Shown in pieces: positions 11,130-64,000 of a DNA stretch of 64,000 nt (its first letter is position 1; every line of letters begins with the position of its first letter). The notes beneath the pieces were generated by a model that had not been told where the DNA came from, did no database searches, and worked only from the letters and a program-made list of their open reading frames with translations. The stretch lies in assembly GCA_904063045.1 (NCBI GenBank), contig CAJFCJ010000018.1, positions 930,001-994,000 on the forward strand, given 5' to 3'. This stretch comes from Dimorphilus gyrociliatus. Lineage: Eukaryota; Animalia; Annelida. The position numbers were made by a program, and so were the translations under genes.

Positions 11130-11502
11130 TGGGCTACAATGACTATGTATTTTGTATCTTTCTATCATTAAATTAGTCAGATATCTATTAAAAGAAACAA
11201 AAAATATAACAACTAGATCATTAAAGCGGTAGTGGTCATATCTATAAAAGGTTTATTATCTCACTTAAAGATAGACTTAGTTTCCAAAATTAACTTTTTG
11301 TTGTTAACGCCATCTGTCTATCTCCATAAACCGGATATCGTTTGACCCCATCTTCCGGCTTACCGGTGAAGCGCACGTAAGAAAGTCAGAATGTCGTCAG
11401 TTTAAGTTGGTTGAAGCGTGAAATAACTCTGAGAAAAAATTATTATTATTAGCTAATCAGGCCATTCGAGGATAGTAACTCAGACGACAAGCTGATAAAA
11501 AG

Positions 11503-45667: not shown

Positions 45668-48600
45668 TTAATCTTGAAAAAAAGACAAGCTTTTAAGGAA
45701 AAGTGGTAGAATAACCTTTCTAGACGCCTTCACATTACGCTGTATGAAAGCAGAGGTAAAACGTTGTGACGCTGCAGGCAAGTCAAGTCTATCTAAGTCC
45801 AAAGACGGTTCTCGACAATTCGTTAATATTTTCACTGCCTGGAAGTGAAAAAATGAATAACTTTTAACATATGAAAACTACAAAACATTCTCTTCGTTTC
45901 TCTAAATATCAACGAGCAAAAATCAATATTTGTGTAACGTTATACTTTTATTTCTAGATAGTGAACTTTTAAAAGGAAACAATAAAAAGAAATAATAAGA
46001 GATACTAGAGACAAGGGGGAGGAAACGTGTAGCCCAGCAGGTATTGCATTAACGGTTGTCACGAAACCTTGAAGCCGGACATGTGTTGTATTGTCATTAA
46101 AATAATCTAATTCTCTGAAGTTTCTGCATTCAATGACAAACAGAGTAAAAATAATTCGTCGAGAGACAATACAAATAGAATCATCAAAGCACATTGTTAA
46201 AAAGGTAGGAGAAGATAAAATAAAATAAATGAACAAGAGCCAGAGAGGGAGTAAAAGAATTGGAGATGTGGCGAAGGGGAGAGAGAGGAGAGAGAGAGAG
46301 AAAATATGCACTATTTATTAAACTAACTTCAAAAGCAAATTCCCCTTTTACACAACACTATATCACGACTACTCCCCCTCTCTCTTTCATGTTTTTATCA
46401 TTTTCTCTGACGTTTTTGTCATTTATTTTATTTGAGCACAATAGGCCTAGCTAAAACTAGACTACATAAATTCATTACGGTTCATCTTTAAATAAATAAT
46501 TTATATCACATTTCCTTCCTGATTTATGAATTAGCAAGGAGGAGGAGAGAGCGTAAAGAATATTATGGTTAAATACCCTATACTTATCAAAGTTTAATCT
46601 TTGTTCTTCCTATTTACTTTAAAGGACGCATCTATTTTTATATAAATATATAATAAATGTATATTATATTGTAAATTGCCGTAGAAATGGCTTACAAAAT
46701 ACAAAAAATTTATTTGGCTTTATTAGTCAATGTAGCGAATAAAATTCTCTTTTAGGTCGATTGAGTAATTTGAACTAAATACAGAGACAGAGAGAGAGAG
46801 AGAAAGAAACAAAAAAACAAGTGAATAATTAACAAAATAGAGTAGAAAGTTAAGGTTTTTTCTAAAAGTTCTTGTATAAACGATAAATACTACGCTGTAG
46901 GCATTTTCCACTTGTTATCACAAGAATAATTATAGAATATGAAGAAATACGACTATTAAAAAAATCAATACATATATATAATATAGTTGTATATAACAAA
47001 TCGAATCTTTCTTTAGACCAGTCGTTTGAAAATAGTAGTCAGTTTATCAAACTAACAAATAAATAGAACAGAATTTCTTTACAATTAAAGCGTAATAATT
47101 GACTATTTTCATAGAAAAAAAGGAGATAGGGGTTGCAAAATAATAGTACAGTCTACTGTAATTGACTAATTTAGTCATGTTATTCCTAATATATAAGTTG
47201 TTCTATATAATAGAGAATATTTTAGAGATTATAATAGATATTATTAAATACTTTTTTATATGAATTGCGTTAAAGTCAAATAGTATTGAATATAATGAAC
47301 GTCACTTACAAATTATGAATTTATGTCCATAAATCAGATTGGAGAAAATGTAAAGAACTTTTCATGTTAATTGCACGAAGTTTACTAAACACTACAGTTC
47401 TTCGAATCTTAATAATACCCTCGTGAATAAACTCGAACAATAGGTGGCGCTATATTTCTATTACGAACCTCCTCTTTTATCTTGTTATTTTCTGAATAAA
47501 CTGCAATTTCACGTTTTGTGGTATTATCCTCAGTAACGAACAATACCATAATAACGACAAGGTTTAACGAAAATAGCTTAGAAAATTCTCTCAATTCTCC
47601 AAAGACGTTGTCCTTATTAAAGAATGTCTAAAAACAGAGACAGAACATAAATTAAGCATAACATAATTATTCTATTTATTAATTAGTACAACAATTGTTA
47701 TTAAAACATCTATATAATGGGAATAAATTAACTTACAAGTAGCGGAAGCGGTATTGAACTAATTCCAATTTTAATATTTGCATCGTTGATAATCTTCACA
47801 TCTTTCCTTAAGATTTCCACAAGTGTAAGACCTTGAAGAGAGAGAGAGAGAGAGAGAATATAACAAAGATTTATTATAATTAATTAATTAATTAATTTTT
47901 ACTTGAAACATCAGTTTTCGCTTTAAAGTACTCATTAAAAATTTCAGTATGGTCTATGTTTGGTAGATATTTTCTTTCCAATTGATTTAATATGATTTTA
48001 TCTTTTTCTGTTACTATATCAGCTTCTTTGGATAGATTTATAGTATCCAGAATGATTGTAGCTACGTAAACATTCAAGATGTAAAAATCGATTAATTTCA
48101 TTTTTAAATAATTAATTTACTGTATAGCATTTCGGCCAAATGTTTGTCAATTGTAATACTTGAGTTTAAAATTAGCTCAGCTATCAAAGTACTACAAGAG
48201 CCAACTTTTTCTATTTTAGTTTTAACTCTGTAAATGAAAGTATAATTACTATAAATTAAAGACAAAAGTGTAATTAACCTTTCATCATCAACCCATTGCT
48301 TTCGATGATGATCAACAATGTAGGTAATGCACGGTTTGAGAGGTATTTCGTCTTCGGATAATGTATTTCTATCAACAAGGACAACCTCAAGCTTTCCTTT
48401 TTCTTTATAATCAATTAAATTAATATCATCTTTGAAATGGAGGAAAGATGAACTTATTCCGTATTTATCAAAGAGGTGTTTAACTTCCGTTTTCAAAGGA
48501 TAGTCCTCTTTATTGATATTCAATACTGGTATTGTTTTTGCATTATCTGTCTCACTTGTCTGAATTAAAAGTATCTCTTATGAAAAGATGATTATTTCTA

Positions 48601-48849
48601 AAAAAAAAAACACTTGAAACTAAAAGAAACCTTATGCAAATAGTATCCAAAAGAGACAGCGGAAGCAGCTGAATCTAAGTCACAGGCACTGTTTCCTATA
48701 ACTGCTCTCAAGATATTGTTTCCTCTTATGTTCGCCTGTAAACAAGAAAAATTTGCAATATTTTATAAGCTTTGTGTTTACTTTTAGCATTCGTATTTAC
48801 TGACAATAGCTGTTTTACACCATTCTAAATATTTTGCTATTTCTCCCAT
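45668..48849 (-). CDS. PRUNE: Prune exopolyphosphatase (DHH + DHHA2)
   Basis: VIGNSACDLDSAASA, IVDHH, VGSCSTLIAE, KREIAVYS. The last exon AVKILTNC...QRNVKASRKVILPLFLKSLSFFQD* matches the PRUNE1 end QGNTQVSRKKLLPLL. Confidence 0.92.
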
Positions 48850-49585
48850 AATGTTTCTTCTATTCAATGGTGATTGGAGTTAATTAAAAGGTGTTGAAAT
48901 GTCACAGGCTGATAGTGTGATATAGGAGACCAGCGAATTAGAAGAAGAGGATATTATGTGCTCTGTAAATTTTTACACTTTCTATAATAACGAAAACCCT
49001 TCGTCTCTCAGATTAAACTAAATGCTTTATCGCTTTTTAAAGCAGACGACACCGCCATATTATAAAGAGAAATTCCAACTCTAAATCCTAGTTGTCTGTC
49101 GTCGGGAAACTAATTAAAAAGTGACATTTGAAGTAGAAAGAATAGTTAATATATTGTGTCATTTTAATATAAGAAACACATGTTTAAAGTACTAGTTAGT
49201 AGCAAACTATTACTTTAAACTAAAAAAGAAATTATGAATATATAAATGATGTTATTTATACTTTCAGGTTTTATTTTATGACTTTATATCCAAAAATATT
49301 AATTAATATACTAATTTTATCAGATATATTTTTTATATTTATATTTTCTTTGGTACTTCACATCTTATTCAATAATATCAACTGTAAAAATGATCTTTTT
49401 CGAAACTTAGGCCTATGCGGCAATAATATCAATATTATTTTATTATTAAGATAAAATATTTAATTTATTTTAATTTTTCCGTGTGATTATTTATTAAAAA
49501 AAGCAAAAGTTTTATGTGTTTTTACGAGAATCCAGCGGGAAAAATAACGCCACCTACAGTTAGTTAAATTTCAAAGTGTGGCAAT

Positions 49586-50291
49586 ATGAGCGGGCAAGAA
49601 AGATGTTATCCATTGAGTAAACATGTAATTTAATTTAACATTTTTATGCTTGCCTTTCAATAGCTATTAATATGTTTTTATAATTGATTACTATGCTATT
49701 GTATATCACGTTAAAATCAGTTAAAATTTTTGTTAAAAAATGAACGATAATACAGATCTTGGTTGAAATTACTAATGGTACAGTCGATATTTCATGGATT
49801 GAATTTGATGACAGAATTCTCATAAACATAACTCAATTTGGTAAATTTGGAACATTAGTGAGTATCTTTTACTATGGCTTACTCAGCACAAAAAATTATT
49901 ATTCCATATGAAATCGTTATCTACTATTAGTACTATCCAAATATTTATAAATAATACTAATCAATTCATTTATGTGTCTTAAAGATCCATTCTTGCAAGG
50001 ACGTTAATCCTGAAGCCTCAAGATATAGTCTTCAAACAAGTGATCCTGTTAGCTTCACTAACAAGGTCCTTTTTGGTATCGAAAAGGTAATATTATAAAA
50101 CACAAACATCAATCAATTATTATATTCAAATTTACTTATAGCCTGAAATGTTGATGCTGACGAGATCTTTAACGGCGAAATTAGACAGAAATAAACCATT
50201 GTTATATTCCTTGTCTCTTAAAGACTTTTCCATAGAAACTTTAAAAATTATAGAGAACTCTATTGTAGATTTAGGTTCCAATTTAGCTTAA
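49586..50291 (+). CDS. PSMG3: Proteasome assembly chaperone 3 (PAC3), 4 exons, absent from the ORF track; head-to-head with Prune
   Basis: MSGQERCYPLSKH|ILVEITNGTVDISWIEFDDRILINITQFGKFGTL|IHSC...FTNKVLFGIEK|PEMLMLTRSL...LLYSLSLKDFSIETLKII matches PAC3 (HILVVVTQFGKMGTL; TTKVLLGQDEP). Confidence 0.9.
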
Positions 50292-50350
50292 GGTTAAAAT
50301 GTTAATATTAAAAATAAAATTTAAAACTGCTGATTAAATTTTACTTAGAG

Positions 50351-50632
50351 TTATATCTCAGTTTTGCACTGATAAAGATAACTCAACTCCTGTAGGAGTG
50401 TAAGTTATCTGGTAAATCAGAAAGTTTCGAGAGTAAATCCACTATTAAATACCAATCCAAACTGTATAGTGGTGTATATGTCATTGATGATAAACATAAG
50501 ATTCGGAAAACTTAACGAAGATTCTTCCAAAAACCATTCTAAAAGTAGAAGAATCTTTTGGTAGAATAAGTCCGAAAGATTATAATTTAAAAGTTCCAGC
50601 TGAATCAACTTTAATGTTTCCTTAAAAACTTC
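50351..50632 (-). other. Unresolved coding-like segment between PSMG3 and IMP4
   Basis: An open helical-looking frame (NDAVLEVFKETLKLIQLELL...TIQFGL) can be joined through a 63-nt GT-AG intron to ELSYLYQCKTEI*, but I found no in-frame start exon. Confidence 0.25.
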
Positions 50633-50918
50633 AAGAACAGCGTCGTTCTAGAACGGAACATTTCAGAATAATTTTTCCTTTGAGTTTGCACGCACTTTTC
50701 ATGCTGATAGTAAAGAAATTATATGTTATATATAGTTTACAATTTCTCTCGCTACATTTTTAAATCTATTTTATCTTTTTTTCATTGCGGAGTATATAAT
50801 TTATAAAACACGGTATTTAGCGTTACTCGTCTCTGGAAACTGGTGAACTTTTGAATGTTTTACAATTAAACAACGTGCTTTTTCGGTGTCGATTTGTTAA
50901 GCTTGGATCCTTATAATT

Positions 50919-51861
50919 ATGGTATTTATTTATTATTCAATAGCACTGATTAAAATATAATAATTTATCCTTAAAACAGCTACGCAGACAAACCCGCCTC
51001 CGACGGGAGTTTATATATAGAAAGTCTATAGAAGACAGGGAGAGAACTATTCGAGACAAAAAGCAAAAGCTAAAGTCAGCTGTTGACAACAATAAGATGA
51101 TAGATGGTACACTAAGGAAACAGGCAATTGAACTAGATAATGCTACAGCATGGGATGATGAAGGAGGTGAAGGAACAACCTCGACTCAGGATGACGAATA
51201 TAGATGGGCGGGAGTTTCTGATCCCAAACTAGTTCTGACGACAGCTAGAGATCCTTCTGTCAGATTAAAACAATTTGCTAAGGAAATGCGATTGATATTC
51301 CCTAATTGCAAGAGGATAAATAGAGGAAATTATGATTTAAAGCAATTAATACATGCCTGCCGAGCAAATGAAGTTTCAGATTTAGTCATCTTATCTGAAC
51401 ATCGTGGAGTTCCTGACGGAATAATTATAAGCCATTTACCTTATGGTCCAACCGCTTATTTCACTCTCCTACATACAGTTATGAGGCATGATGTTCCAGA
51501 AGCTCAAAATTCTAAAGTATCAGAAGCTTTCCCTCATCTCATATTTCAAAATTTAACGTCAAATCTCGGTAAACGTGTTACCAATATATTAAAATATCTG
51601 TTCCCTGTTCCAAAATCTGACTCAAGGAGAATAATAACTTTTTACAATAATGACGACACTATATCCTTCCGCCATCATACTTATAAAAAAGAGGGTCCGA
51701 GTAATGAACTAACAGAGGTTGGGCCTAGATTTGAAATGAAATTATTCAAAATTATCCAAGGTACATTAGAAAATGCTGACAGTGCTGACGTCGAATGGGC
51801 TCACAGACCGTTTATGAGAACGGCAAGAAAGAGAAAATTTCTATCAGAAGAGGATGATTAG
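50919..51861 (+). CDS. IMP4: U3 snoRNP protein IMP4 (Brix domain); exon 1 is the ATG only (50919-50921), exon 2 is 50980-51861
   Basis: M|LRRQTRLRREFIYRK, DDEYRWAGVSDPK, SEHRGVPDG, LTEVGPRFEMK. Confidence 0.97.
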
Positions 51862-52175
51862 ATAGACTTCCGTTCAACATTTGAACTATAGTGCATCTAT
51901 ACATAGTTAAAAAGATATTTTAGATAATACTTGAACTTTAAAAATACAAATAACAAAGTATTTATAAAAGAATATGCAAAATGTTTACTTGTTAATATGT
52001 TCGAAAGTAAATTAGACCATTTTTAATAATCATCAAAGGTTTAGAATTAAAGTTATATTAAAGACTTGTTTTTAGTTTAATTCTTTTCCGATTTGGGTCA
52101 TGAAGAGCAAAGAATATCGTATCAGAAATAGTTAACGCCTACTACTTTAGTTTGAACTCATTAGTTGTTAATGAG

Positions 52176-53810
52176 ATGTCTCTTAAAACATGGTTTAAAG
52201 CGAATTGGCGACTTGTGATTCTTATTTTGATACCCCTTCTGTTTATGCCAATACCAATAGTACTGAAGACTAGCGAGGCAAAATGCGCTTATGTTCTTAT
52301 TATTGTTGCGTCGTACTGGATGTCGGATGTATTACCATTGGCCGTTACATCATTGCTACCAGTTGTATTGTTACCTCTCTTTGGTATTTTAAGAGCTAAG
52401 GATGCCAGTAAGACTTACTTTAAAGATTCTACTATGATGTTTATGGGAGCTATCATGGTTGCTTTAGCAGTTGAAAAGTGCAATCTTCACCGCCGTATAG
52501 CTCTGAAAATTTTGTTAATTGTTGGCGAAAGGAAACCTAATTTAATATTTGGCTTTATGCTGGCTACTTGGTTACTTAGTATGTGGATTTCAAATACTGC
52601 AACGACGGCTATGATGCTTCCTGTAGCTGAAGCCGTACTTTCTCAATTAAGTGGATTCGCTGACGAAGATTACAGTAATTTCGGTAAATCTTTAGCTATA
52701 TGCATAGCTTACGCGGCAAACTGCGGTGGAACCGCAACGTTGACCGGAACAGGCTCAAATATGGTAATGAAAGGATTCGTCGATGATCTATATGAAAAGC
52801 ACAACGTCACAACTGCACTAACTTACACGAACTATCTTGGCTGGGGTTTGCCAATAGCTTCTATGATCCTTATATTAACTTGGTTATGGCTATCGATACT
52901 TTTTCTTGGCTTTAGGGAATTTTTTTCATGCTGTCGAAGAAAAAAAACAGATTTGGAACGAAGGGATCATGGAATTCAAGATATGATAAAAGAGGAGTAT
53001 ACAAAACTCGGAAATATGAAATATCAAGAAATTGTTGTCATTGTTATATTTACTACTTTGGTTCTCCTATGGTTTTTTAGAGAACCTCAATTTATGACAG
53101 GTTGGTCGGCAGCATTTAGGCCAGGGTTTGTTTTTTAACTTATAATTATTGACATAATTGACAAATAAGAGTGTTTTTCGTATCATAGGTACGTTACGGG
53201 AGCCGTTCCGTCAATACTTTTATCTACTCTCATGTTTATTATACCGACAACACGTCCATTCAGCAAAAGTGCAGACGATAGAGATTATATTCTTACGTGG
53301 CCTTTTGTCCAAAATCGCATGCCTTGGGGGATTGTACTACTCTTTGGGGGTGGTTTTACAATGGCTGAAGCTTGTTCAAAATCTGGTTTATCATCATTGA
53401 TTGGTGAAAAGTTGGCAACTTTTGACAGATTACCAAGTGCGGTAATGGTTGGTCTAATATGTCTGCTTGTAGCTATGCTCACTGAGGTTACATCAAATTC
53501 TGCAACAACAACACTACTTATGCCAATAATGGCTAGTATGGCAGAGAATATGAAAAAAAATCCTCTATATCTCATGTTACCTGTCACAACATCAACTTCT
53601 TTTGCTTATATGCTTCCAGTAGCAACGCCGCCAAATGCTATTGTCTTTTCAACAGGGCGTTTAAAAGTTGTAGATATGATAAAAGCCGGATGGATTTTGA
53701 ATATATTTGGAGTTTTAATAGTAACACTGGGCACTCATACATGGGGGATGGCTATATTTAAATTTAATCAATTACCATGGCAGATTAACAACTCTACTAG
53801 AACCCTATAA
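52176..53810 (+). CDS. SLC13 Na+/di-tricarboxylate cotransporter (INDY-like), single intron at about 53125-53189
   Basis: LPLAVTSLLP, KCNLHRRIAL, SMWISNTATTAMMLP, GGTATLTGTGSN, MPWGIVLLFGGGF, TEVTSNSATT, LPVATPPNAIVF. Confidence 0.95.
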
Positions 53811-54480
53811 GCTTCTATTTATGTTTCAATCATTATTTAATTATATACTGAAATAAAACACACACATTCTTCTCACCCTATTACTCCTTTTAGAAGGTCA
53901 ATGCTATAAGCCTAATGCATATATTTTTATAACTTTTGTAGGCCTACTTTGCTTAAATTTTCACCATTCTGTCAATAGTTAAACATTAATGTTTATTAAA
54001 ATACTCTTCACCTTTGATTATATTGTTATTTCAATGAATGTTGATAAAGAAACAACGATTATATATCTCTTTGAATTTATATATATACAATACAGTGTTA
54101 CATAAAGTTCCTTTATTGTTTCTCTTTCGCTTTTTGTCTTGCTACTCTTTTAGTTCAGCCATAAAAAGAATGGGTTATAATTATTTATTCGTGTGGTATA
54201 GGCCTATTAATAAGTGTTAGTGAAATGTTAGAAAATAACAAAACTTGCGTGCTAAGAAACATCTTTCCTAGATAAACTATAGGCCTATTAAAACGCATCA
54301 ATAATTTATAGGCGCAATCAATCGACAACATGTTCAAACTTGATCAGCGCCACACCTGAAATCGTTCATATCTATTTCTGCAGTCTTCTCGAATGAAATT
54401 TGTTTCATTCGTCCATAAAAATAAGATACTAGTTCAAGAACTAAAGGAATAAATAAGTTACAGGAACTTTTTAAAGGAAA

Positions 54481-55783
54481 ATGGACGAATTGAACACTTG
54501 GAGGAGGAGCGGAGAACTATCTGATTTAACTATTCAGATAGATGATTCGGAATTCAACTTGCATAAATTTCCAATGTTTATTAAGAGCGATTACCTAAAG
54601 AAGAAAATATCGGAATGCAATGATAACAAAGCCGTATTGAAACTTTCAAATTTTCCTGGTGGAAAGGAAATTTTTGAGATTGTTTCCGAATTTTGTTACG
54701 GTGAACGTTCCTCCTTAAGCCAGGAAAATGTCGTTCAAACAAGATGCGCCGCCCATTTACTCGAAATGGAAACCACTGGTAATTTGGCGTCATTTTGCGA
54801 CAGAGTAATCGATGATCTTTTAAGGAATGCCAAAAATTCGAGATCAACTTCCGTTTCGATTGAAATGTTAGCTGTTTGTGAACAACTGGGAGATATTAGT
54901 GACAAAGCTGGAATTGTCGATAGATGTGTATCTGCATTAATTGATGTCCTAAGCATCAGTGGACGTCAACAGGTAAAATTCTCTAACATTTGCCCTTTAT
55001 TCTTGAATATTTTGCGGTTATTTTAGTATTATATTTTCTTTCATTAAAATATTAGGTAACTGAAACTTTAACCGGTTTAAGTTCAAACTGGTTCGAAAAA
55101 CTACTTGGGGCTGCAAGAAAGAAGAATATGAGGCCTCATATTATTGGTGAAATGCTCATTTCCTATCTGCAGATTTCATTTATTTATGAAAAAGATGAGA
55201 CTGAAGAAGAAACCGACAAGAAGAAACATGTTGAATTAGCTGATGAAGAAAGACAGCATCTCCTCGACGATGTCCTATTGAAAGTATTTAGGGATGAAAA
55301 TAAAGTTGGCGAAAAGCATGCTCTTCAAGAAAGGCTTAATCCGGAATTAGCTGTCAAATTGCTATCGGAAGCTGAGAGATTAAAGTGTGACGTAAAAGAC
55401 GATTTAAGAAGACTTTGTGCCAAGTTAGTTCCGAGGTTAAAAGCCCCCGACCTCGCTCAACTTCCTCCAGAAGTTGTTGTTGAGATGGTACAAGTGGGAG
55501 AAACAGATTCGGCGAATAAAGAGGCTGCCTGCAAGACTGCCGATATTTATCTCAAAGCGTTGGCCGATAACAAGGTAGGACAAAATTACATTTAAAAAGG
55601 TTAACAAATACCTGCATAAATATAGAGCATTGATCATTTTCTCATTATAATCTGACAAAAATCTATATTTAGCGATTAGACGCTGAAACGTTTGCGGCCG
55701 TTTTGAACGCCGCACCAAACGATGCAAGAACAAACCACGACAACCTTTTTGAAGTTTTGCACACACTCTTACAGTCAGGTTAG
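54481..55783 (+). CDS. BTB + NPH3-domain protein (NRL-like); exons 54481-54972, 55056-55574, 55673-55778 (stop at 55783 if unspliced; may continue)
   Basis: BTB: SDLTIQIDDSEFNLHKFPM...FPGGKEIFEIVSEFCYG...ENVVQTRCAAHLLEM. NPH3-like: MRPHIIGEMLISY, KTADIYLKALAD, TFAAVLNAAPNDARTNHDNLFEVL. Introns are in phase 0. Confidence 0.8.
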
Positions 55784-58289
55784 TGGATTAATGTAAAGTT
55801 TCGTCCCCTCTTTCTATTTGTAATCCTTTTATGATTTTCTGTTTTCTTATTTAATGAGTTTTTAAAAGGGATCAATAACAACTCTTCCCTTTTTCTGACC
55901 TTCTTATTTTTTTCTTCTCTTGGACTTTTAATGGTTTCAAATTGAACGTAAGTTCATTCAATATTTTCATTTTTGTTTGAATTGTTTGGGAAGGTAAAAA
56001 GTAAAAAAGTTGTGAAAAATAGCAATTTTTCATACAGCCAATTTCCTGAGTATAAATAACGTTTATTGGCCTAAAATCGATAATTTTTTATTTCCGTTTA
56101 ATGTGGCAAGATTAATGCATTTTATTAAAAAAAAATTGAACATTAGCAATTTATTAATAGCAATTCTAATCGCAAATTTCATTGATTTATTGCTTAGTTC
56201 AAGAATAGGTTCTGTTGTGATTATTCTTAAGTAAACCCAGCCAATATTGTTATCTAGAACAATACCCGAATCTTTACAATTGAATACAAAACTCCCCAGA
56301 CTAATAAATGACGTCTTTGGTTTACAAGCAAAAAACCCTTTGGGCTTAAATTTATCTGTTTTTTAGTATGGGTAGTTCATATGCTTTTTACTTTTCTAAG
56401 AAATAGTCATTCCCTTCCGTCCTTTGACCTTCCATCAGTTTGACAAACTAACCACCATTGATTTTGTTGAAAAACTTCCAAAATGCCAGAAATAGTACGA
56501 AGATCATTAGAATTTTCATAGAGAAGATCATAGAGAATAGACATTTCGACAGAGAAACATCATTTTCACTTTCATTCGTGCAAACTCTATAAGATTTTTG
56601 AAAAATTCTTGCATAAACATAACTCTTTTCTATAGTTTGAGAGTAGAAATCTAAATGTAATAATCTTCCATTATTTCCTTAATTTAACATAAATATATAA
56701 TCTCTCTTTTGCTGGTTTTACACGTTTGATTGTTCAAAAACTACAATATTAGATTTCGAGTAGAATATCTTCTCCCTTTGTCTATTATTACAAAAAATAA
56801 TTCAATTAGGCCTAGATTCATCAGTTTTTTCCCCAGTTTAATTTCACTTAATTTATAATAGAATCGCAAGAAATAAAGACAATTATAGCTAGTATTTCAT
56901 CTATTAAATTATGAACTTTGTTACCATATTGTAGGGTGACCCTGATCTATAGTTTTTCTAATAGAAAAAATTGATAACGATATTTAGTAGGTTGTTTGTC
57001 CTGCCTGGGGATTGGGTTAGCTATGGAAAACATCCACTTAGCTGATATTTGCTAAAATGTTGTATAGTCAGTAGGTCTAAAAATTTGAATTTTGGGGAGG
57101 CCTATCAGTCAGTTTATTAACTGTATGTGGAACATCTATTGAATAAAATATTTCTCCAAAGAAAATATCTTTACAATGTACTATTCAGTTAGTGTTAGAA
57201 GAGGATTGCAGTTGCCTCAATTTCATGTGTAGAACTTTTCTCATTTGAATGATTTTGTTTTTCTAAAAATTGTGATCCTTTTAGTACAATAATTGCAGGA
57301 CATTTGTATTTTCCCATCATTTTGCTGCAGACCCATGTTGTTTGTCTAACTGATTGTTTTTTCGCTGCAAAACATCTTTCCCTCTTCTCGATCCTTCTTT
57401 AAGAATCTTAAAATTCTCTTGGTTTGATTCTTTTGTCAATTTGTTACGACTTTCTTCAAATGAGCTTTCATCAGAAACATTCACTGAAGTTGTGGAAATT
57501 TTTAGTGTATAAGTTTCATCAGATGAATCACCAATTTCCATAGAATCTTCATTTGAAAAATCAAATAATAGTTCAAGCTAGACACAAATACTAAAATTGA
57601 ACATAATGATAAATTAAATATAAATTTAACCTCTTTATTTCCAAATTGATGAAGATTCTTATGATTACCATTTGCTAAAATAGTTGAAGATTCAGACCCA
57701 AGTGACTCCATTTTAATTTTGTCAGTTTCAATACAATCTACTGCAGTTCTTTTTTCCAGTTGATTTTCTTTTTCTGTTTCAGATTCATATTCAAATTCAT
57801 GTTCATTTTCATTTTTCATTCAATTTCAGTTTTCCATAGTTAGCTTATTCCTTTCAGTCTGTTTGTCATTTTGTACTGGCAAATTGTCTGATAGCCTTTC
57901 CATGAATTACAAAAATCTTGCTCTGCATGTTATAAGTTTGGAATGATATGCATAATAATGAAAAGTATAACAAACCTTTGAGGCAAATATCATGACAAAC
58001 ATGTCTACACAACAGACATGTCTTATTTTGTTTTGAGTTTAAACTCTTTTGACAGTATTTTCATTTGGAAGACATTTTTTCAATATAAATGTGTATCTAA
58101 ATTTCCTTAAAATTATTTAGATAAAAATTCCTTGCATGGTCATTACATAAAGAGACAAAAAAGTTAATAAATACAATATTTTCAAAGCTTGTCAGCCTCC
58201 AGTCTTTAACCATAGACTTCACTGTACTGTTAGATTGAAACTCATTTACTTAACACATAATTTATTTGCAAAGCTCTGGTCTTTCCCTT

Positions 58290-61710: not shown

Positions 61711-63749
61711 TTTTAGCCTACAAAAACAAATTTGTATTAGCTCAACCTGTTGCATAATATCTGTATAAAGCCAATTAGCCGTCTTGCCGCCTCCACCAAA
61801 ACAGCAATTCATTATTATATTGTATAAAGTAGAATATAAGAGTATAATAGATGGAGCACTCTGAAATTGAAAATACCTCACTCCTTAGGAGAGATTGAAA
61901 AGTATTTGCAATATTAAAAAACATATAAAACTTTTCAACAAGAGAAATTAAATTGTTGTTGAACAGCTTAATTATTAAAGTGTTTAGTGTTGAATATAGA
62001 GTTTTTTTTCAAATATGAACAGCTCCATATTCTCAAATTGTAAAAAAAAATAGCAATTATGTTGTAATGATGAAATTTAATGAGTAATATCATTTCTTAA
62101 ATTATGCAAAAGAATGGAAACATTACTTGTAGTGATATCAATTTCAGATATGGTATGTTGATCTTTAGAAGTCAATTCAATATATTTTGTCACATAATTC
62201 AAATTGTTAAGACAGCATGTCTGTGAAGATGAGAAATTTGTACTAAGAAGAAATTCTTTGCCAATTAGATCAGTTTTTGATTTAAACATTTTAACAATAA
62301 ATCCGTTTGTAACATAAGTATTTAATACTGTTTTGCAAAGAGAGAAGATATAATAGAATTATAGAAAAAAAATTTAAGTTTTCAATTCTTTACCAGTTAT
62401 GCAGAATGATGCTATTTTAAATGATGGAGTTTGTATTTTAATCATTTCACTTTGATTAACTTTGATATAATTTGATTCTACAACACCAAAGTATATATTA
62501 TCAGTTAGAATTGATTTTACATTTAAACTTCTAATTTCAATGGAATTGATTAATTCTTTTACATCTGTAATTTAATGAAAACTGTTTAATAATGAATTGT
62601 TTGCTAATTGTCTGTACTTTGATGTTCGCTATTTTCAGAAATTCCATAGACAACTAATTCACTAAATTCTAATTTATATATCACAGTATCAAAAGTACTG
62701 TCATAGAGCGATATAAGAAGATATCTTCCATTCATTGGTACAGTTTTAAAAAAGCCATGAGTTTCATACTTATTCAGTGGAATTGATGTTGTGTAATTCT
62801 TCACAAGAAAGTTATTGTCTATATTAAAAATTGTTTGTGGAGAATTATTTACAGATATATAAACATTTTTAAATATCTTATTAGGCCCTCCTGAAAGAAG
62901 AGTAGAAGATGATAACTACATATGTTATACATGATCATTGGGTCATACCTCTTCTACAGGTTATAATAACCCCATATACACGAATGTTTTCCATAAAATC
63001 CAGCCTGAAGAAAACATCATTTTCTCTCTCCATTGAAAATATTGTTTCATATTTTTCATCTCTGAGTTTTGTTAGTGAAAATGTTTTGTCAAAATTTTCT
63101 GAATGGGACAAACTGATGATTTGAAAATCTAAACAAATGATCAAAAGTGAATAAGAAATGTGAAAAACAAATTATTCATCATTGTAACAAACCTCTCTTT
63201 TCAACGAGTTCGCCATAAACTTTAACATCGCACATTCCAACAAATGTGTTCAAAAATTGAGCTCGTATTTGTAGGAAAGATCCAATAGCATTAGATGAAC
63301 AATTTAAACATTCATAATCACTTAGAAAATTTACACTTTTCTTAACAGGTGTACTTCCCCAACTACCACAGAGTTTATCGTTTTCATCATCATCGAATGG
63401 ATATTGTTTCAATAAAATATCAAAATTTTTCAATAATGTATCTGAAAAGTTTGAAATAAAAATAAACACTCTACCAAAAACTTAAGAATTATGTTATTAC
63501 AAAACTGATGATCTCCTCTATTTAATAGGCATACAGAAATTATTTTGTAAATATTTTTTAAATCAACCATCCACCAATTCCTTTCATTTGTATTGCTATA
63601 TGTATAACTACACTTGTAATGACCATTAACATGTCCGTTTATAATTTCTGCGTCATTTGCAAGATATCCATAATAGTTAGTTGTACTTTGATAGGTTGGA
63701 AGGCCTCTGATTAGATTACCTTCTTCATTTGGTTGACCAATTGTAAGTT
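61711..63749 (-). CDS. Modular extracellular protein with tandem F-type lectin (fucolectin)/discoidin-like domains; 5' end not identified (possibly beyond the window), 3' part apparently disrupted
   Basis: Exons 63749-63501, 63441-63193, 63128-62949, 62890-62618, 62564-62394, 62327-62127 and 61883-61711 all join in phase 1. Motifs CSYTYSNTNERNWWMVDLKNIYKIISVCLLNRGD, GSFLQIR...GMCDVKVYG, GRYLLI...EFSELVVYG. Confidence 0.75.
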
Positions 63750-64000
63750 CTGTTTGAAAACATTAGATAGAAACCAAAAAATTGTTTCGTTTATAATTTT
63801 AACAAACTTGATAATTGGAAGATTAATATTATTTTAAGCATTGCAACAATATCAGGCAAAATACTAACAATTGCAACAAGTCGATAATTTCAAATATTTA
63901 ACATAGTTTTAAATAATAAACAACAAAGTGTTCTCTTCTCCAACTCAATATTTATTGTATAAAATTCAAAACTATAAATAATTGCTATTAGAATGAATCG

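Follow-up and report, generated by a model that had tools for sequence, protein, structure and literature searches.

A truncated BTB–NPH3 gene in the annelid Dimorphilus gyrociliatus and its relatives in six animal phyla

The annelid Dimorphilus gyrociliatus carries a real gene for a true member of the BTB–NPH3 family, the family of the plant NRL proteins. This gene is very probably an orthologue of a BTB–NPH3 family distributed across the animals, which has been transmitted vertically since at least the common ancestor of cnidarians and bilaterians; the D. gyrociliatus copy is truncated and probably still used. In the plant literature, NPH3 and BTB–NPH3 proteins have been called plant-specific or said to have arisen at the origin of plants. 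For example, one description is "specific to terrestrial plants" (PMC6700132), and a 2024 paper presented the NPH3 domain as a kind of GTPase that metazoans lack. The sequence-only reading of this locus, in which NRL proteins were said to be generally regarded as plant proteins, agrees with these published descriptions. No paper on animal NPH3 proteins was found in the literature on NPH3 in combination with invertebrates, metazoans, horizontal gene transfer, or BACK. Vertically inherited BTB–NPH3 genes in six animal phyla correct the stated plant-only distribution and reopen the question of where the family originated. Because the proteins are already public, and some of them are automatically named after plant NRLs, what is new here is the recognition of the family and its phylogeny, not the sequences.

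Gene structure and genomic context

The window analyzed is a stretch of 64,000 nucleotides from contig CAJFCJ010000018.1 of the D. gyrociliatus assembly GCA_904063045.1. Splicing of three exons between positions 54481 and 55783 of its forward strand yields a product of 373 amino acids, including the glycine that precedes the TAG codon at 55781–55783, and this product is identical, residue for residue, to the NCBI protein DgyrCDS11254 of Dimorphilus gyrociliatus (P0006, 373 amino acids). The three in-phase exons of about 373 amino acids that had been read from the letters alone are thus borne out, with GT–AG introns between them, and all of the motifs quoted in that reading were found in the translation. 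For the splicing and the 3′ end of the gene, the public annotation is the basis; the look-up gave no assembled transcript that codes for exactly the 373-amino-acid protein, and the genome was the sole exact record in it. A 13-kb Logan contig from run SRR23372228, derived from a close relative of D. gyrociliatus and referred to below as L001, was used for comparison. The features of the locus are as follows:

54481–54972, + strand: exon 1 (amino acids 1–164), with the start codon, the BTB domain, and a helical linker; read from the ORF and its splice donor
54490–54774, + strand: BTB domain within exon 1 (amino acids 4–98; Pfam BTB, 40.2 bits)
54973–55055, + strand: intron 1, 83 nt, GT..AG, phase 0; its excision reproduces the NCBI protein exactly
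55056–55574, + strand: exon 2 (amino acids 165–337), the N-terminal and central part of the NPH3 domain (Pfam NPH3)
55575–55672, + strand: intron 2, 98 nt, GT..AG, phase 0
55673–55783, + strand: exon 3 (amino acids 338–373), with the conserved P..R..HD..F helix and the TAG stop codon at 55781–55783
55779–55784, + strand: GTTAGT, the former donor of the conserved phase-1 intron of the family; the TAG within it is the present stop codon
55785–55852, + strand: the final 68 nt that can be aligned with intron 3 of L001 (blastn of L001 against the window)

The gene lies on a 1-Mb animal contig, and the genes upstream of it encode a Prune-type DHH phosphoesterase, PAC3, a Brix-domain protein, and an SLC13-type Na/sulfate symporter. 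L001 was collinear with positions 47468–55852 of the window at 70–79% nucleotide identity (blastn), and the collinear block holds the Brix-domain, SLC13-type symporter, and BTB–NPH3 genes. This block ends 69 nt past the stop codon of the BTB–NPH3 gene, indicating that the gene is located at a rearrangement or deletion breakpoint. The sequence-only reading had placed debris of transposable elements beside the gene, for which no support was found: the downstream 8 kb contained no repeats found elsewhere in the window and no sizeable family-matching ORF. Two annotated genes encoding 149 and 170 amino acids were located downstream in AT-rich DNA, at 57317–57819 and 62935–63570 (both on the − strand), and neither product had a Pfam match.

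Domain composition and conserved residues

When the whole protein was compared with Pfam, both domains were detected above threshold: BTB (PF00651) with 40.2 bits (E = 4.2e-10, residues 4–98) and, C-terminal to it, NPH3 (PF03000) with 47.0 bits (E = 3.5e-12, residues 166–371), the gathering score for NPH3 being 27 bits. Exons 2 and 3 also matched NPH3 individually (E = 1.2e-5 at profile positions 5–78 and E = 0.02 at positions 199–231, respectively) and did so in the right profile order. The NPH3 match covered positions 4–231 of 258, and the last ~27 positions of the profile are absent from the D. gyrociliatus protein. Among the animal relatives, all 21 NPH3 regions searched matched PF03000 (best E = 8e-20), whereas no BACK domain (PF07707) was matched by P0006 or by the 21 animal relatives at E values up to 10.

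These results bear directly on the reading in which the gene encodes an ordinary animal BTB–BACK protein and the NPH3 match is spurious. In its favor, the part of the model that follows the BTB domain can be superposed on BACK domains (see below), and one BTB–BACK protein, P0004, matched exon 2 at E = 9.1e-5. However, the NPH3 score exceeds its cut-off and spans 206 residues, the protein aligns collinearly with plant proteins across the two domains, and the worm protein and its relatives match NPH3 and not BACK, so that this reading fails and must be considered highly improbable.

An alignment of 67 family members, in which a column was defined as conserved when the same residue occurred in at least 80% of the sequences in animals and in plants, contained 39 columns conserved across both kingdoms. 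These columns, common to the plant NRLs and the animal members, include the motifs LHKFP, FPGG, RCAA..L.M, D.YL, and P...R..HD. The D. gyrociliatus protein retained 32 of the 39, differed at six, and lacked one that falls in its missing exon (described below); residues P352, R356, and D360, all encoded by exon 3, are conserved in both kingdoms. The plant NRLs, including Arabidopsis NPH3, RPT2, NPY/MAB4, and DOT3, have the same BTB–NPH3 order and align collinearly through both domains. The D. gyrociliatus protein was ~23–27% identical to the plant members and differed from them in having an NPH3 domain without its final part and no C-terminal region.

Orthologues in other animals

Profile searches, each of which scored 8000 word-sharing candidates, identified BTB+NPH3 orthologues in six phyla:

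Annelida: Capitella (CAPTEDRAFT_221817)
Mollusca: Patella (SNE40_017839), Lottia, Babylonia, Saccostrea, Sinanodonta, Ruditapes, Mactra, Mytilus, and Mya
Nemertea: Lineus and Tubulanus
Rotifera: Rotaria and Brachionus
Hemichordata: Ptychodera
Cnidaria (octocorals): Xenia and Dendronephthya

Seven bivalves were among the mollusc orthologues. Some of the animal proteins carry automatic, plant-derived database names, such as "root phototropism protein 2-like" in Xenia and "DOT3-like protein" in Mya, and another has been named "putative BTB/POZ domain-containing protein At3g08660". Contamination is unlikely, given that many of the orthologues are located on chromosome-scale contigs. One cluster of the oyster type comprised 373 member sequences in run assemblies, including several full ORFs of 596 amino acids on contigs of 2–3 kb; because the mollusc genes carry introns here, these ORFs are most simply explained as spliced transcripts. 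A word-indexed search with a profile of the animal NPH3 domain alone returned only four proteins, all of which were already known. The exhaustive HMMER search was performed with exon 2 alone, and its five matching proteins served as an entry point rather than as a measure of distribution, their small number being attributable to the divergence of exon 2. The only protein outside the family that matched exon 2, P0004 (563 amino acids), contained a BACK segment of ~45 residues in at least five tandem copies, which may be an artifact of assembly or gene calling.

The animal orthologues belong to the same family as the D. gyrociliatus protein, share the conserved position of the phase-1 intron, and were 30–37% identical to it. 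They differed in size and completeness: the orthologues are 530–800 amino acids long, and in them an entire NPH3 domain is followed by a long C-terminal helix and a tail that varies, whereas the worm protein stops at residue 373.

Phylogeny and intron positions

A maximum-likelihood tree, which had been proposed as a check when the gene was first read, was constructed with IQ-TREE (LG+C20+F+G4 by PMSF; 54 sequences, 558 columns, unrooted) from 33 animal and 21 plant sequences, all of the latter from flowering plants. The animal sequences grouped by phylum and apart from the plants. Specifically, all 33 animal sequences were split from all 21 flowering-plant sequences at 100/100 (ultrafast bootstrap/SH-aLRT), with a branch of ~2.2 changes per site between the two sets, and clades were recovered for Mollusca (100/99), Nemertea (100/100), Rotifera (99/96), and the octocorals (100/100), with Ptychodera placed beside the octocorals (100/98). 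D. gyrociliatus and its close relative L001 formed a pair (100/100) in a group that contained Capitella (91/86), next to the nemerteans. The D. gyrociliatus sequence falls outside the sampled diversity of plant NRLs, on the animal side of the 100/100 split. The grouping of the orthologues by phylum, and of the worm with Capitella, is what would be expected of vertical descent accompanied by losses rather than of a transfer into the Dimorphilus lineage. The stem branch of Dimorphilus was 1.54 changes per site, and the D. gyrociliatus gene differs from the other animal orthologues in this long branch and in having two extra introns. Truncated and evolving fast, it does not represent the family as well as other members do.

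The exon–intron structures of animal and plant genes were mapped exactly from their genomic loci. A phase-1 intron directly after the LLxS/T end of the HD..LF helix was found in L001, Capitella, Patella, and Ptychodera; as it is common to annelid, mollusc, and hemichordate genes, it dates back to at least the protostome–deuterostome ancestor. The Xenia gene is intronless. Introns 1 and 2 of the D. gyrociliatus gene were seen only in Dimorphilus and in L001, where the introns at the matching places are 81 and 92 nt long, respectively, and no intron was found at the position of intron 1 in Capitella, Patella, or Ptychodera.

In plants, three intron positions were common to Amborella, Morus NPY2, and the Bidens RPT2-like gene (L006, L010, and L011), which represent different NRL subfamilies: a phase-2 intron near the N-terminus, a phase-0 intron inside LHK|FPL, and a phase-0 intron after YLK. 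The last of these aligned 4 nt upstream of the animal phase-1 intron, an offset that we regard as suggestive only because the phases differ. None of the four animal genes that were mapped had either of the other two conserved plant introns. One phase-0 intron specific to Bidens and intron 1 of the worm both lie in the variable linker that precedes the NPH3 domain, but the two introns are not alignable. This comparison of intron positions with the plant NRLs had also been proposed in the sequence-only reading.

The reading in which the Dimorphilus lineage recently acquired the gene horizontally, with a plant or alga as donor, and introns were gained subsequently can be assessed in light of these data. 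It draws on the premise that the family is plant-specific, and on nothing else; against this, orthologues grouped by phylum are present in six animal phyla, the Dimorphilus sequences are placed with annelid-type sequences on the animal side of the fully supported split, an intron of the gene family is common to other animals, and the locus is syntenic in the relative. We consider such a transfer barely conceivable, and the earlier suggestion that the gene was "horizontally acquired and intronised" in this lineage is not supported in view of the six-phylum distribution, the grouping with Capitella, the synteny, and the shared phase-1 intron. The alternative offered with it, that of an overlooked lineage kept in some invertebrates, is supported back to at least the cnidarian–bilaterian ancestor; that the lineage may be anciently eukaryotic, as the proposal also had it, is one of the two histories considered below.

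Loss of the last exon and constraint on the remaining gene

The orthologue on L001, whose protein was 85% identical to that of D. gyrociliatus, shows what the D. gyrociliatus gene lacks. Exon 3 of L001 ends at a GTCAGT donor, and a fourth exon follows ~860 nt onward (L001: 12151–12408). The 86 residues that this exon encodes complete the NPH3 domain and add a long helix, bringing the spliced protein to 456 amino acids; a C-terminal HMM derived from other animals and from plants matched the exon at 67 bits. Capitella, Patella, and further relatives likewise possess the part encoded by exon 4. The ~860-nt intron 3 of L001 looks long beside the 81–98-nt introns of this gene. In D. gyrociliatus, the donor reads GTTAGT, which places an in-frame TAG directly after the Gly codon.

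No fourth exon was detected in the rest of the window (8.2 kb, to position 64000) or in the 1.8 kb that follow it on the contig (L004) when these were searched by tblastn with 12 relatives, with the C-terminal HMM on six frames of the window and L004, and by tblastn and blastn with the exon-4 peptide of L001 and the 3′ region of L001 from position 11301. The D. gyrociliatus protein ends at residue 373, right after the HD..F helix, and has no C-terminal extension past NPH3. In the predicted structure of the NPH3 region of Lineus, by comparison, two further short helices and a 38-residue terminal helix would follow, which are absent in the worm protein. The NPH3 domain is thus cut short after the R..HD..F helix because the last exon is missing and the old donor supplies the stop codon. 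The missing part makes the word "complete", which had been applied to this BTB + NPH3 architecture, inaccurate for D. gyrociliatus: both domains are present and in order, but the NPH3 domain is missing its final part and the C-terminal helix is gone. Exon 4 could be located more than 10 kb away, or could have been lost through an assembly error.

The retained part shows strong constraint. Over exons 1–3, the comparison of D. gyrociliatus with L001 gave dN = 0.081 and dS = 1.39, with similar values per exon, and a dN/dS of 0.058. With dS saturated, this ratio is an average over two lineages and would not reveal it if the D. gyrociliatus gene had become non-functional recently. In terms of sites, 63% of the synonymous sites differed compared with 7.6% of the non-synonymous sites. 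Introns 1 and 2 were 46% and 68% identical, respectively, over their aligned columns. The reading frame and all splice sites of exons 1–3 were intact, with no frameshifts. The strong purifying selection on the retained part suggests that the gene is probably still used.

The opposite interpretation is that the D. gyrociliatus copy is decaying, the loss of the last exon having disabled the gene and left the open frame as a remnant. The missing fourth exon with a TAG in the former donor, the lack of an assembled transcript with the exact product in the look-up, and the fast-evolving branch are all compatible with decay. On the other hand, three exons and their splice sites have remained intact and free of frameshifts, the dN/dS ratio is low (with saturated dS), 32 of the 39 pan-kingdom conserved residues are kept, and the truncated chain folds confidently in prediction. 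Decay is therefore unlikely, and continued use of the truncated gene remains our preferred interpretation.

Relationship to plant NRL proteins and origin of the family

Vertical descent within animals does not by itself determine how animals and plants came to share the family. In one scenario, the family was passed only once, very long ago, between streptophytes and the stem of Eumetazoa, in either direction. This scenario competes only with the reading of the family as anciently eukaryotic and is compatible with vertical descent inside animals. Several observations are in line with it: the named matches among the 8000 word-sharing candidates scored per search came from animals and flowering plants only; no obvious NPH3 orthologue has been reported in Chlamydomonas (PMC6700132), so that the distribution would be patchy; animals and plants each form a single group in the tree; the whole two-domain architecture and many residues are common to both; and the conserved animal intron lies just 4 nt from a conserved plant intron. 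However, the searches, with 8000 candidates scored in each, returned no algal, protist, or non-flowering-plant sequences, which is not proof of absence elsewhere; the tree is unrooted, with a long inter-kingdom branch (2.2 changes per site); and the other introns are not shared between plants and animals. We therefore rate an ancient transfer as the less probable course of events, although one to be taken seriously, and descent from an early eukaryote with many losses is a possible alternative.

We lean toward the view that the NPH3 domain is not a plant invention but belongs to an old family, one that the cnidarian–bilaterian ancestor already possessed, and that its core job predates, or is independent of, phototropin and auxin signaling. 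Animals are not known to have phototropin or the PIN/AGC-kinase partners of the plant NRLs, so the biological role in animals must differ. If this view is correct, animals can be used to study the core job of NPH3, be it that of a CUL3 adaptor, a trafficking scaffold, or the reported GTPase, and the naturally truncated copy of D. gyrociliatus would show which portion is able to work by itself. The animal genes also give access to systems that lack phototropins and polar auxin transport, in which the core function of NPH3 can be examined.

Predicted structure and a proposed mechanism

The AlphaFold2 model of the D. gyrociliatus protein, based on the 67-sequence alignment, was confident (pLDDT 92.3, pTM 0.86) and predicted a BTB domain and, after it, helices in an unbroken array. 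Its BTB part superposed on solved BTB domains with Z scores of 15–16 and an rmsd of 1.5–1.8 Å. When the following helices were included, residues 1–284 of the model matched the BTB–BACK region of KBTBD2 from CUL3 complexes (Z = 15.0, rmsd 4.0 Å, 229 residues), and residues 1–206 matched the BTB–BACK region of vaccinia A55 bound to CUL3 (Z = 14.7, rmsd 3.3 Å, 185 residues). The NPH3 part was also compared separately. A Foldseek search with the NPH3-only model produced no match at E ≤ 0.001 (best E = 0.028), and a wide structural search with it returned generic helical repeats and weak BACK matches only. Its superposition on BACK domains had a Z of ~7 and an rmsd of 2.0–2.6 Å, values within the noise range of the tool for helical proteins and in a register that differs from that of the full-length alignment. 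A sequence search of the PDB found no NPH3 domain.

The model resembles the BTB–BACK adaptors of CUL3 (KBTBD2, KLHL11, vaccinia A55, and the C-terminal domain of SPOP) in that the BTB domain is directly followed by a predicted helical array. It differs from them in having no sequence-level BACK match and no Kelch or other substrate-binding domain, and its helical region is longer than BACK, with an ambiguous register of the match. A candidate for the phi-x-E CUL3-contact motif was considered at I43-S44-E45 and dropped, as it was not conserved in the other animal members.

Arabidopsis NPH3 is a substrate adaptor of CUL3. By analogy with it and with the BTB–BACK adaptors, the idea of a CUL3 adaptor is plausible from the predicted fold, and we tentatively propose, as the likeliest mechanism, that the D. 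gyrociliatus protein might act as a dimeric adaptor or scaffold of the CUL3 type, with a partner bound by its helical NPH3 part. In such a mechanism, the N-terminal BTB domain would dimerize, the BTB part and the helical extension would bind CUL3, and the helical NPH3 solenoid would then hold a substrate or partner. As the worm protein has no C-terminal helix, a function in partner binding or membrane tethering may be gone from it while being kept elsewhere in animals. A different activity has been reported for plant NPH3 domains, that of a trafficking-linked GTPase, for which catalytic residues were not named (PMC11313873).

The C-terminal regions of some other animal members have features of their own. 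The Rotaria sordida protein P0039 (632 amino acids) carries a TIL (trypsin-inhibitor-like cysteine-rich) domain at residues 569–628 (Pfam E = 3e-14), and this combination with BTB–NPH3 reflects either a genuine fusion or the merging of gene models. The octocoral-type members (P0038, P0055, P0024, and P0031–P0035) have a C-terminal extension, absent in bilaterian and plant members and without a Pfam match, that occupies the last ~110 residues and is conserved among them, with motifs such as FLFDPF and a terminal YWPF.
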